Shown: positions 45,757 through 50,797 of the stretch, piece after piece
How the letters are laid out: each line of letters begins with the position of its first letter
Position numbering within the stretch: position 1 is the stretch's first letter
Origin: Cyanophora paradoxa CCMP329
Taxonomy: Eukaryota > Plantae > Glaucophyta
Assembly (NCBI GenBank): GCA_004431415.1
Contig: QPMI01000491.1
Location: 62,001 to 126,000 of the forward strand
Direction of reading: 5' to 3'
Length of the DNA: 64,000 bases
Program-made: the position numbers and the translations under genes
Notes under the pieces: model-generated
What the model saw: the letters and a program-made list of their open reading frames with translations, nothing else
Told to the model about the DNA's origin: nothing
Database searches by the model: none

Positions 45757-46142
45757 CTGCAGCTGCCGGCGGATCGCCGATGGGTCGGATACGTATTACG
45801 TACGCGAGCTGCCCTGCCCTAAGCGCTCCTCGTCTGCAAGTATGATCCGATCGGCGTTTGCGTCACGTTCGAATTCGCGCCAGCCCGACTCACTGCTGCT
45901 GCGACGAAACTCCCCTGTATATTGCGTAGCCCCCTCGGTTGCGCGACTCAGCGCGAGTCACCGCGACTCAGCGCGAGTCAGCAGCGCGACTCCACGAGCA
46001 GGCGTCGGCTGAGAGCAAGTGCGAGGCTTAGCAAGCGAGCCCTCATCAGCTGGCTCAGCGGCAGGCTCGCGGGCATCTCGCGCCATTGCGGGTCCGGTCA
46101 TTCCTGGCGGTTTGGACGTGGTCGTCTGCCCGGCATAAGCAG

Positions 46143-47648
46143 ATGGCCTTTCTTTGCCCTCTTGGCGTTCCCGCCACCTTTCGGCGAGACGCGCGAGCGC
46201 TCTCCTCGAGCTCGGCGCCGGCGGCGGCGCCGGCCGCGGCCGGCTTGGAGCGGCGGCCTTGCTCTGGCCTGGGCGGTCTGGCATTCTCAAGCTTGCTCGA
46301 GAATGCCGATCGACGCCGTTTCTTTGGTCTCGCTTTGGACATCGCCCGACCCACCACGTATACGTACGTATACGCTTGCGCATGCGCATGGCATACCTTT
46401 ACGTATACGTGATTGATTGACCTGTCGGCCAGCTTCTCGCTTCCCGCGGGCCGACAGGGCCTCTTCGTCCTCAGCGAGGGCTCGGCGCCGCGGCCGGCCG
46501 CGGCCGCGGCCGGAAAGAAGCTGAAGAATCTCAAGCCAAAGGGAGCGAAGAAGAGCAAGAAGTCGAAGGATGGCGCGCCGGTCACGGCTCCAACGGCGTC
46601 GTCCCCCGCCGTGCGCGCGCGACGCGCCGCGCCGGACGCGCCGCGACGCTCCCTTTGAGCGCGCTGCAGCTGGCGCCCGCGCAGGTGGCGCGGACGTTGC
46701 GGCACGCGTGGGCGGCCCCGGACGATCTCTTCTACGCGCCGCCCGAGATCAAGGAGAAGTACTCCAGGGTTTACACCGACGGGAAGGACTACTATGCCGT
46801 CTTCCTTAACATCACGGACATAAGGCGCGCCGCCCGCCCGACGGCCGCGGCCGCCGCTGCCGCGGCCGCCCGCGCACGCCCCCCGCTGAGCGGCGCACAC
46901 AGCCACGAGAAACAAGGGCACAACAAGTTCTACGTGATGCAGGTGCCGGGGGGCCAGCGGACGCCGGCGCCAGCGCGGGGGCCGGGCTCGTCGGCGGCTC
47001 ATGGGCCGGACCGCATGCGCAGCTGCTGGAGGAGAGAGCGCGGCCCGGCAAGTTCGTGGTCTACACGCGCTGGGGCCGCAACGGCCTCTACGAGAAGCCG
47101 CCGGCGCACAAGATCAAGGAGTGCGACGGCCTCGAAGGGGCGAAGAAGCTCTTCAAGGAGAAGTTCAAGGAGAAGACCGGCAACGTCTTCGGGGAGCCCT
47201 TCGTCCACCTGAAACACAGGCCTGGCAGGCCTGGCAAGCGTGCGCGGGCGCGCCGCCGCGTCGACGTCCGGCGCCCGAGCGACGGGCGCGGGCGGGCGGC
47301 GGGGGGCGCAGCGCTGTACGACGTCGTCGAGTTCGAGTACGGCCCGAGCGCCGCCGCCGGCTGCTGCTGCGAGGACGAGGGCGTCGACTGCGAGCGGGTG
47401 GTGCGCGCCCGAGCCTCCCCGGCCCGCGAGGCCGAGGGCGCGGCGCAGCTGACGTCGACACCCCGCGCCGCACCGCATGCGCAGTGGGCCGCGGCGTGGC
47501 CGGGGCGGCCGAACCCGCTTGCCGGCTGCGCGCTGGAGCCGGCCGTGCGGGGCTTCCTCGAGCTCGTCCTCCTCCGCGCCGCCCTCGAGCTGACCCTCTT
47601 GAACATCGGCGTCGACGTCGGCTACTACAGCGTCCCCGTCGGTGCGCC

Positions 47649-47682
<34 letters not shown>

Positions 47683-48802
47683 GCGGCCCCGCTCACCGGC
47701 GCCCCGCGCCGCGGCAGGCAAGCTCTCCAAGCGGCAGATCGCGAAGGGCCTCAGCATCCTCCGGCAGATCCGGATCCTGGAGCTGGGCGAGGGCGGCCCG
47801 GCCCTCCTCGAGGGGCTCTCCAGCCTCTTCTACACCGCCGTGCCCCACGGCTTCGGTGACCGCGGGCGGGCGGGGCGTGGCCCTCCCCGTCCCCCCTCCT
47901 CACCGGGCGCCAGGCTCCGAGAGGCCGCCGGTGGTGACCGAGCTCCGCGACCGGTGGCCGGGATCGCGTCCCCGGGACTTCGTTCTCGACCGCGAGTGCG
48001 CGTACATCGCCGTCCTGGTACCCGTCCCATCCCGGCCCCTGCCGGCCCCGCCCCCGCCCCCGCCGGCGCCGCCTGATCGCGGCCGGCGCCCCGCCGCGCC
48101 CCGCAGGTGTTCGTTGCGCTTGCGCTCCGCGCGGCCGGCTCCATCGACGACGCGCAGTGCCTCCAGAAGCTCGTGCGCGCGTACCCCTCCCTCCCTCTCC
48201 CCCCGCGACCCCCTCGGAGCGGCGCCGGCCCGCGGCCGGCCGCAGGGCGAGGCGGTGGACGGTCTGCGGGGGGCGATCCCGGACTACGCGGAGACGCGCG
48301 CGGAGCGGGTCTCGTGCATGGCCGGTCTTCTCCTCATATCCGCGTGGAACTTCGGTCGGCTCGCGGGGCATGCGCGTACCCCACGCGCCCCTGCGGCTGA
48401 CATCGTATCCCTCCTCCCTCCCTCCCCCCTCCTCCCCCCCTTCGCGCAGGCATCGTGCCGGGCAATGAGCCGCCTCCCAACAGGCTCGGGCCCTTCGCTG
48501 CCGCCCTCCGCAAGCAGTCCGCCCGGGCCCGGGCCCTCGCCCCTCTACCTCTAGATCTCGTCTTGCGGCGGCGGCCGCCTGCGGCTGACACGACGGATCG
48601 CAGGGAGGGCCACGTCGTCCTCCCGGCGGTGGCCGACGTTGTCGATCGCATCTTCGCGGTGCCCGGCCCCGGCCCGCCTCCCGCTCGCAGGAGACGAGGG
48701 TTCGGCCGCCGGGCTCACGCGCGGCGCTGGCAGCCGCTGCAGGAGGAGGCGTGGAGGCTCGACGAGGCGCCGAGGAGGAGGAAGAGCCTGCCCCTGGACT
48801 AG
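46143..48802 (+). CDS. WGR + PARP regulatory (helical) domain protein lacking the PARP catalytic domain, with putative plastid transit peptide
   Basis: Exon 1 MAFLCPLGVPATFRR..RRRFFGL splices in phase to Lys-rich exon 2. WGR: YYAVFLNITDI..HNKFYVMQ|LL..VVYTRWGRNG..AKKLFKEKFKEKTGN. PARP_reg: PVG|KLSKRQIAKGLSILRQI..LSSLFYTAVPHGFG|SERPPVV. Stop at 48800-48802 with no HGS/YFA/NEY motifs. Confidence 0.8.
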
Positions 48803-49278
48803 GCCGGCGGGGCCTCTTGGAGCGCGAGGCGCGCGCGGGAGGCTTCAGCTCCTTTGCGGCCGGCAGCCGGCGCTCCGAAGCTCTGCAGCCGAGTCGACCG
48901 GCCGGGCGGGACGCGGCGCACGAGCTCGAGGCTCGAGCTCGTGCAACTTGGCAACTGGGCTCATGATCAGCTCGCTATATTGCGCCCGATGCTTGATGGC
49001 GTGCTGCCAAGCCTGTACCCCACCCCTCGCGGTCGGTCTGCCTTCCCCCCCTTGCCGCAAGAACTGTTACCCGGCCTCCGCGTATTTTGTATTATTTTAG
49101 AATTAGCTCCCCCCGGCCAGTCCCCCGGCCGCGGCCCCGCATAAATAGCCACTCCCGGCTCGTCCAGGCGGCGGTCCCTCTTTCAGTCGAAGTCGCGGGC
49201 CTGCAGGCTGCAGCCGACGATGTGCATGGGAGCCTGCCTCGGGATTGAAAGAAAGGGGCCTAGCCTGCGCGCGCCACC

Positions 49279-50744
49279 CTAGAACTGGAGCTGGTCGGCG
49301 CCCGGCCCGTCCCACGGGTCGCCCGCTGCAGCGTGGGAGACGTCGGCGGGGGGCGCCGCGTTCGCGTCCTTCTCGACCTGCCCGCGCCGCTCAGATCTAG
49401 AGGGCTCAGAGAGGGGGGTACAGGGGCGCGCGCACCTCGTGGGCCTCGAGGTCGACGCTGTTCTCGCGCCCGAAGATCGTCATCGTCGCCGTGATCGTCT
49501 TGCGGTCCTCCGAGATCCCCGTCACCACGCCGCTGAAGCCCTGCATCGGTCCCGACGTCGCCACGATCGCGTCCCCGACCTGTACCCAGGTCAGCGGGGG
49601 AGGGGGGGGGGGGGGGGGGGGGGGGGGGAAGGGGGCGGACCTTGACGTGCATGGGCTGGTAGTCCTCCTCGGTGACGGTCGCGCTGAGCTTCATGATGCG
49701 CTCGACGTCCGCCAGGCTCAGCGGCGCCGGCAGGTTCACCGGCTTCTTCCCCCGCCGCCGCGCGTTCGTCACCTTGCGCGCCTGCCCCACGAAGTTGATC
49801 ACGTTGGGCAGCGAGATCAGCTCCGACGCCGTCTTGTACTCCTCGTCCATCACCATCTGCAGCAGCACGTAGCCTGCGCTCGCGCGCGTGCACGCCCCGT
49901 CAGCTGCAGGCGGCGGACCGCGGGCGGCGGAGCGCACTCGGGAAGAGCTTCTGCTGCATGGTGCGCTGGCGGCCGCCGGTGTCCGAGCGGATGTACGTGC
50001 TCTTCGGGATCAGGACCTTGAAGATCTGGTCCCGCTTGTTCTTCTTCACGATGTAGTGCTCGATCGACGCCTTGACGTGCTGCAGGGGCGCCGAGGGCGC
50101 GCGTTAGGCGGATCCCCAGGCGCGAAAAAGGAAGAGCAAAGGACTGGAAGCGGGGGGGAGGCCCGGGGACGCACGTTCTCGCGGTTCGTGGCGGTCTGGA
50201 GCATGTACCACCGCGCCTTGTCGAGGTTCTTGCGGATCCGCTCGATCAGCGCCTCGTCATCGACGCCGCTCGCTGCAGCAAGAAGATCCGGGTCCTCCTC
50301 GTACACGTCATCGCCCTCCTCCTCGAGTCGCTGCGCCGCGTACGCGTCGTGCTCTTTCAGCAGCTCCTCCTCCGTCATGAGCTCGATCTCCAGGTCATCC
50401 TCGTCTATGTCAACGCCAACGACTGGCGCGTTCGTCGGATTCTCGTCCTCCTCCTCTAGATCGGCGAACTCCTTTTCGATCTCGTCGTCCTCGGGCATTG
50501 CTTTGCCCCGACCCCGCGCTAGGGCATGTACGGGCTCCGCTGCCTCACGTGCTTGCCTCCGAGGACGCTGCTGCTGTGCAGAGAAGGCGCGCAGCGAAGC
50601 GCCGAAAAATCTTGACCTACTGCTGGCCGGCATGCTAGCTGGGCGGGCCTGCGGGGTCCCAAAGGCGCTACATAGCTGTGCGGCAGCTGAAACCGGCGCC
50701 TCCGCCGCGCGGGGAGCCGCGGGCACGCCGGACGCGAACGCCAT
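49279..50744 (-). CDS. nusG: Nucleus-encoded, plastid-targeted NusG (pTAC13-like)
   Basis: Transit peptide MAFASG..SRSRFFGASL, acidic linker, NGN domain (ARWYMLQTATNREN..QKLFP..YVLLQMVM..LPNVINFVG..PAPLSLADVERI), KOW domain (VGDAIVATSGPMQGFSGVV..MTIFGRENSVDL). Confidence 0.92.
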
Positions 50745-50797
50745 AGTCGAGGGGGGGAGAAGTGACAGGGGGGGACAAAGCGGAGGTCGCGGCAGCT

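Follow-up and report, generated by a model that had tools for sequence, protein, structure and literature searches.

What can a protein built on poly(ADP-ribose) polymerase (PARP) domains do when it lacks the polymerase itself and carries what resembles a plastid address at its N-terminus? The question is raised by the gene tig00020878_g14869 of the glaucophyte Cyanophora paradoxa CCMP329, whose coding sequence occupies positions 46143-48802 (+ strand, 14 exons) of a 64,000-nucleotide (nt) stretch of nuclear DNA (contig QPMI01000491.1, positions 62,001 to 126,000), hereafter called the window. The WGR domain is the break-reading part of PARP1, PARP2 and PARP3 and, to our knowledge, it is outside bacteria almost always coupled to a catalytic domain. 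A previous reading of the locus based on the bare letters (the sequence-only reading) had described the gene as a truncated PARP, reduced to a WGR and a regulatory domain, that appears to be plastid-targeted. Our analysis points to an expressed, lineage-specific chimera, in which a catalytically empty PARP cassette is set into the frame of another protein type and which would be imported into the muroplast, binding organellar DNA without an enzymatic step. Taken as a whole, we give this reading an even chance, while its parts differ in strength, as described below.

A word search with the WGR exon retrieved the annotated product from EukProt (EP00741, tig00020878_g14869.t1), here P0001, which corresponds to isoform t1 and has 549 residues; isoform t2, P0002, has 554 residues and is five residues apart from P0001, at the acceptor of exon 3. 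The 14 exon coordinates translate without difference to both annotated proteins, and all the exons lie in one intact frame without internal stops. The Pfam analysis of P0001 identified a WGR domain at residues 170-250 (PF05406, 51 bits; cut-off, 22) and a PARP regulatory (helical) domain, PARP_reg, at residues 310-403 (PF02877, 49 bits), the latter matching positions 1-95 of the 135 of the profile. Each of these domains was above the threshold already in single exon-frame pieces. In contrast, the PARP catalytic domain (PF00644) gave no match at E<=10, as the sequence-only reading had anticipated, and at that threshold no Pfam family matched the segments 1-135 and 400-549 either.

The catalytic domain was not found by other routes either. 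When the C-terminal tail was compared with a profile of 25 full PARPs, hhalign returned a probability of 0.3%, and a tblastn search of the six frames of the window with the catalytic domain of the Gloeochaete PARP described below gave a best E-value of 0.95. There is no downstream catalytic exon: from 48734 the RNA contig continues without splicing past the stop codon (48800-48802) as far as 49198, next to the convergent NusG-like gene; the 3′ untranslated region (UTR) thus covers 48803-49198. Without an ADP-ribosyltransferase (ART) domain, the protein cannot make ADP-ribose, and no ADP-ribosylation stimulated by DNA breaks is expected of it. The tail was also considered as a distant PARP relative, given that PARP clusters appeared among its protein-language-model look-alikes; their score of 0.83 is below the meaningful level, and the hhalign comparison gave no support. 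Two other candidates for ART-less proteins with WGR and helical domains, P0005 and P0021, were rejected as split gene calls, with PARP catalytic open reading frames immediately downstream on the same strand. Both are metagenomic and belong to the same GHNK[FY]Y subclade as P0001 (loci L001, 4001-5920, and L002, 37-2035). Unlike those split calls, tig00020878_g14869 has no catalytic sequence in its vicinity; it would offer a natural experiment on a WGR and a helical domain alone. From those profile matches whose sources were looked up, a canonical PARP in Cyanophora was not established.

The PARP-type portion of the protein largely keeps the residues that are invariant in the family. Its best relative of solved structure is human PARP2 (E 1e-20, residues 158-403 of P0001), and alignments to PARP1 extend to residue 425. 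Among 51 PARPs, 55 columns show a conservation of 80% or more; P0001 retains 41 of these, and the remaining substitutions in the WGR-helical region are mostly conservative. Obaji et al. examined or mutated ten residues of the PARP2 WGR domain (PMC6294510); according to our alignment, seven of them (K130, Y132, W151, R153, K179, K183 and Y201) are retained in P0001. The WGR domain starts in exon 3 (46670 in t2 or 46685 in t1, to 46824) and continues in exon 4 (46903-46942), a strand with the GHNKFY motif that characterises a PARP subclade, and exon 5 (47023-47239), which holds the core with the W-G-R motif and the KxxxK lysines that contact the DNA backbone. Exon 6 (47312-47400) encodes the last WGR strand, including the tyrosine equivalent to PARP2 Y201, and a linker rich in cysteine and acidic residues. 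The first helices of the helical domain are located in exon 7 (47485-47641), its conserved core (GKLSK ... FYT.VPHGFG) in exon 8 (47718-47855), and the PARP homology ends within exon 9 (47914-48017), at about residues 404-425. In the AlphaFold model of residues 136-549, the block means of the predicted local distance difference test (pLDDT) for the WGR domain are about 83-96, and the helical domain is partly confident. The predicted WGR domain superposes on the PARP2 WGR-DNA structures with template-modelling (TM) scores of 0.81-0.83 and root-mean-square deviations of 2.3-2.7 Å. A word search with the 278-residue frame piece at 47023-47856 returned no match, low-complexity words being dominant.

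Where does this cassette come from? The closest of the 1039 matches of a profile search with P0001 was a protein of the glaucophyte Gloeochaete wittrockiana with the architecture BRCT-WGR-PARP_reg-PARP (P0003, MMETSP0308; 8.7e-30). The alignment of both proteins begins in a Lys-rich linker behind the BRCT domain of P0003, and they have in common a longer loop with the GHNKFY signature, the hallmark of a PARP subclade in which some members are catalytically complete. As judged from these alignments, the source of the cassette is a glaucophyte PARP that is PARP2-like and of the BRCT type.

The two ends of P0001 tell a different story. Nearly all the matches of the profile search were PARPs whose alignments ended at query residues 402-405; instead, an uncharacterised C. 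paradoxa protein of 487 residues, tig00020553_g10699.t1 (P0031), matched the flanks. BLASTP aligned it with residues 1-89 (E 1e-10, 41% identity) and with residues 420-526 (E 7e-29, 43% identity) of P0001. The sequence-only reading had noticed in the N-terminus the same two hallmarks as in that of the neighbouring NusG-like gene, and we used this presequence, which also begins with MAF and contains RFFG, as a control. Its pairwise E-value against P0001 was 5.9, so the likeness to NusG is generic, and the N-terminal match of P0031 reflects homology rather than a general resemblance among transit peptides. Similarly, what had been taken for about 100 unrelated residues at the C-terminus is in fact a segment of about 125-130 residues homologous to this paralogue. 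On this homology, the gene is a chimera, in which a PARP2-type linker-WGR-helical cassette is located inside a P0031-like frame. The description as a truncated PARP therefore holds for the absent catalytic domain and fails for the architecture, because both flanks (1-89 and 420-526) are homologous to a protein without PARP domains. Both boundaries of the chimera fall within present-day exons: exon 2 (46433-46610, residues 74-133) encodes the P0031-like N-segment up to about residue 89 and then the Lys-rich linker, and the P0031-like tail starts in exon 9, at about residue 420. Exons 10-14 (48107-48172, 48246-48354, 48450-48516, 48604-48658 and 48734-48802, stop included) encode the helical tail, homologous to P0031 residues 346-474.

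P0031 itself carries no Pfam domain, no WGR or PARP_reg, and no profile similarity to PARPs; it had no match among the Protein Data Bank (PDB) sequences at E<=1, and a word search returned only itself. Its middle 250 residues are Ala-rich and predicted to be helical, with no Pfam, PDB or PARP-profile match. An assignment as an RbcX-like protein, proposed by look-alike clusters of a protein language model (0.82, below the meaningful level), was rejected.

The presequence is encoded by exon 1 (46143-46363, residues 1-74), which begins with MAF, contains the RRRFFG motif and is homologous to the N-terminus of P0031. The 5′ UTR (45931-46142, as far as the RNA contig reaches) has no AUG and contains an in-frame TAG at 46029, while the next in-frame methionine after the MAF start is residue 192, inside the WGR domain. 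Consequently, the MAF start is obligatory for any WGR-containing product. The RNA contigs showed the MAF exon spliced in phase onto the WGR exons, in agreement with the sequence-only reading, for which this exon was the one that joins the WGR gene in phase; it is also the only usable start. Glaucophyte plastid precursors have an aromatic residue, usually phenylalanine, at the extreme N-terminus (within the first 10 residues), very often as MAF (PMC4510345, PMC7038456). Many of the experimentally mapped Cyanophora muroplast precursors in Table 1 of PMC4510345 start with MAF, the median length of their transit peptides being 63, and this F-based motif is a feature that distinguishes glaucophyte plastid precursors (PMC7038456). 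P0001 shows the same pattern: it starts with MAF, and its residues 1-75 are rich in Ala and Ser and weakly acidic, with 20% Ala, 15% Ser plus Thr, 7% Asp plus Glu and a net charge of +4. The earlier suggestion of an N-terminus similar to a transit peptide, with an N-proximal phenylalanine, thus fits the glaucophyte pattern, and import of the protein into the plastid is reasonably probable on the evidence of this presequence.

The tripeptide FFG occurred 50 times in the muroplast protein sequences of supplementary table 2 of PMC4510345, compared with about 15 by a rough estimate, and may perhaps be a recurrent element of Cyanophora presequences. One example is KSFFG, about 27 residues into a precursor that starts with MF; at the loci considered here, P0001 has RRRFFG, P0031 has RHRFFG and the NusG-like gene has SRFFG. 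The count of ATG-GCN-TTY was discarded as evidence: there are two in the window, both at these adjacent genes, and about 1.6 are expected from the base composition.

In the chimera reading, the F-type presequence would take the protein into the muroplast and would be cleaved after about 60-75 residues. The basic linker and the WGR domain would then bind organellar DNA, with a preference for nicks or 5′-phosphorylated ends and no enzymatic step, and the P0031-type tail could supply the role of its scaffold family, for example in partner binding or tethering. A more elaborate version, which we consider unlikely, is that the enzyme-less WGR domain acts as a plastid DNA-break sensor that signals through a glaucophyte-specific helical domain common to P0031, so that an organellar damage pathway would have arisen by domain capture.

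The transcript evidence supports the gene and complicates its middle part. Read contigs were aligned over 5,001 nt from three RNA-like runs (X1, X2 and X5, from two studies) and one DNA-like run (X13). The gene is expressed in RNA runs of two or more studies, and a 1904-nt contig (record 1 of X1) matches the window with zero mismatches. Its path comprises 45931-46363, 46433-46610, 46670-46824, 46903-46942 and 47023-47299 in its 5′ part, and 47959-48017, 48107-48172, 48246-48354, 48450-48516, 48604-48658 and 48734-49198 in its 3′ part; the short pieces and one hidden joint were inferred by record arithmetic, and the sum closes exactly. Nine of the 13 introns of the gene were seen spliced in RNA, and the tail exons and the stop codon match the annotation; exon 1 and the stop, both proposed from the sequence, were thus as predicted. 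Regarding the introns in general, they have lengths of 58-95 nt and GC contents of 51-95%, and 12 of the 13 are GT-AG. The exception is intron 3 (46825-46902), a GC-AG intron of 78 nt with 90% GC, which is spliced in all three RNA runs. The t1 and t2 acceptors are 15 nt apart, and the RNA contigs of the three runs take 46670, i.e., that of the 554-residue t2.

In the centre of the gene, the contigs of X1, X2 and X5 contain a direct joint from 47299 to 47959, which skips 659 nt (47300-47958) and keeps the 5′-most 60 nt of annotated intron 5 (47240-47311; 72 nt, in frame), a segment retained in all RNA contigs. The joint preserves the frame and would give a 431-residue product. It leaves exons 6-8 and the start of exon 9, i.e., the end of the WGR domain and most of PARP_reg, without spliced RNA support in the three runs, the contigs entering exon 9 at 47959. 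Three unlisted joints in the RNA contigs were all explained by other introns, which means that no contig splices introns 5-8 canonically. The GC bias alone cannot explain the missing middle exons, since exons 10-14 are similar in GC content and were assembled. Nevertheless, the ends of the joint are non-canonical (CG..GC), and no GT-AG or GC-AG pair results from any placement of the joint within its 4-nt CGGG microhomology. In addition, the only sense-strand G-quadruplex motif in 46000-49300 (47284-47306) is located in annotated intron 5, at the 5′ side of the joint. Annotated intron 7 (47642-47717), with 95% GC, is mostly a (GCC)n run, and 47640-47692 is masked as a repeat in the read alignment. 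The DNA run X13 has an unbroken contig across 47696-48060, which counts against a deletion allele in that DNA. The predicted RNA fold of 47260-48000 was no more stable than shuffled sequences (z 0.38) and did not bring the sides of the joint together; being uninformative, it argues neither for nor against template switching. The joint may reflect a genuine isoform, template switching by the reverse transcriptase on an RNA that retains introns, or a deletion in the cultures used for RNA-seq.

Several observations weigh against the chimera reading in the form given above, and the joint is the most serious of them, since it is the only path assembled at this place in the three RNA runs, it takes away most of PARP_reg together with the final strand of the WGR domain, where the Y201 equivalent lies, and no contig of X1, X2 or X5 has introns 5-8 spliced as annotated. 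Three of the DNA-contact positions of PARP2 are altered in P0001 (N127 to Gly, N128 to His and Q159 to Ala). The N127 and N128 positions are also altered in the catalytically complete Gloeochaete PARP, and since the GHNKFY loop is common to catalytically complete members, these two changes are traits of the clade rather than decay. The Lys-rich linker (residues 76-135, net charge +10) resembles a nuclear localisation signal; it could be a non-specific DNA-binding arm after import or a nuclear signal. About ten short strings of P0001 and its N-terminus were absent from the three supplementary tables of the muroplast proteome of PMC4510345, the plastid proteomics comparison that the sequence-only reading had proposed; these list only a few hundred proteins, so that absence is weak evidence, and short strings of P0031 and of the N-terminus of the NusG-like protein were likewise absent from them. 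The tail has a pLDDT of about 40-58 within the P0001 model and the prediction for P0031 has a mean pLDDT of 41, both too poor for a fold search. Finally, the search for orthologues, also proposed at the outset, identified none with the same architecture among the best 150 matches of the profile search, so long-term selection on the chimera is not measurable.

How much these points change the picture depends on the explanation chosen for them. If the main product were the 431-residue form, the presequence would be followed by the basic linker and a WGR domain without the last strand, then by 20 Arg-rich residues read from intron 5 and finally by the P0031-type tail. Such a protein would work without the helical domain, its WGR domain might not fold or bind breaks, and it would act mainly as a P0031-like protein with a basic insert. 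This explanation draws on the agreement of the three runs from two studies, where record arithmetic gives the joint directly and the frame is kept, on the lack of contigs with canonically spliced introns 5-8, and on the assembly of exons 10-14 despite their similar GC content. However, non-canonical ends, the CGGG microhomology and a G-quadruplex are the pattern of reverse-transcriptase template switching; exons 6-9 still have an uninterrupted frame, the conserved helical-domain residues and four introns with clean GT-AG borders, and isoform proportions are not readable from contigs. We regard this form as an unlikely main product. Were the joint real, a gene with a very high GC content would provide a further example of RNA processing that is non-canonical and yet preserves the frame. 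The aberrant processing of the central part of the transcript could also be a sign of decay, in which case a partial PARP copy landed in a P0031-like gene, and the WGR/helical part of the expressed chimera would have no selected role. The occurrence in a single species, with no same-architecture orthologue among those 150 best matches, the 29-42% identity to other PARPs (best match 8.7e-30) and a truncated helical domain without a catalytic partner to regulate are consistent with this view. Against it, the 14 exons form an intact frame with no stops, the gene is expressed in runs of at least two studies, and the family-invariant WGR and helical residues are largely kept while the flanks are only 41-43% identical to the paralogue, which indicates an old event followed by constraint; decay thus seems rather improbable.

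The location of the protein allows another explanation, namely a nuclear or dually targeted, catalytically dead competitor that occupies breaks and modulates active PARPs, comparable with the caspase-cleaved DNA-binding fragment of PARP1. Residues 76-135 are the counterpart of a basic region at the N-terminus of PARP2-type enzymes; this region mediates nuclear localisation and chromatin association (PMC13061835). Nevertheless, the sole available start gives a MAF N-terminus, the F-based motif marks glaucophyte plastid precursors (PMC7038456), and the presequence is common to P0031, which has no nuclear-type domain; a nuclear competitor is therefore quite improbable. For the chimera with a PARP cassette and a plastid presequence, which we continue to prefer, import would mean that a primary plastid, in the lineage with the most cyanobacterium-like organelle, has a PARP-family protein dedicated to it, and the gene would be a clear example of a domain captured by a scaffold targeted to the plastid.

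Among known systems, P0001 can be compared with the PARP2/PARP3-type DNA-dependent PARPs (WGR-helical-ART), e.g., human PARP2. It has the same W-G-R motif and most of the residues in contact with the DNA backbone and the 5′-phosphate, the same basic disordered region ahead of the WGR domain, and the GKLSK and FYT.IPH.FG motifs of the helical domain. It differs from them in the absence of the ART domain and hence of the H-Y-E triad, in a helical domain that matches only positions 1-95 of the 135 of the profile, and in the addition of a plastid-type presequence and an unrelated helical tail. Gloeochaete P0003 shares with it the Lys-rich linker and the QGHNKFYV loop, but combines a complete catalytic domain (243 bits) with a BRCT domain and has neither the MAF presequence nor the P0031-type tail. 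The plant RCD1/SRO proteins and the caspase-cleaved fragment of PARP1 are, like P0001, PARP-derived and act without poly(ADP-ribose) synthesis (PMC6479469 and general knowledge). However, RCD1/SRO proteins keep an ART-like fold and have neither a WGR domain nor an organellar presequence, and the PARP1 fragment is a proteolytic product rather than a gene and also lacks such a presequence.

The statement of the sequence-only reading that it knew of no described plastid PARP-like system has to be softened. In Arabidopsis, a PARP1-GFP fusion has been reported in chloroplasts and mitochondria, and a PARP2 fusion partly in chloroplasts (review, PMC6479469). These proteins are a plastid precedent, yet they are full enzymes, mainly nuclear, with no dedicated transit peptide described. 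None of the papers in the library searched links Cyanophora with ADP-ribose polymerase.

Downstream of the chimera, the 3′ UTR, unspliced and with no further exon, adjoins the 3′ end of the NusG-like gene, which is transcribed convergently (49228-50757, - strand). This neighbour is expressed and spliced, and its product starts with MAFASG; its NusG and KOW Pfam matches are weak, at 16 bits each, and below the cut-off in single-exon pieces. A contig of run X2 extends from 48733 to 50757, so the 3′ ends of both genes abut or overlap.

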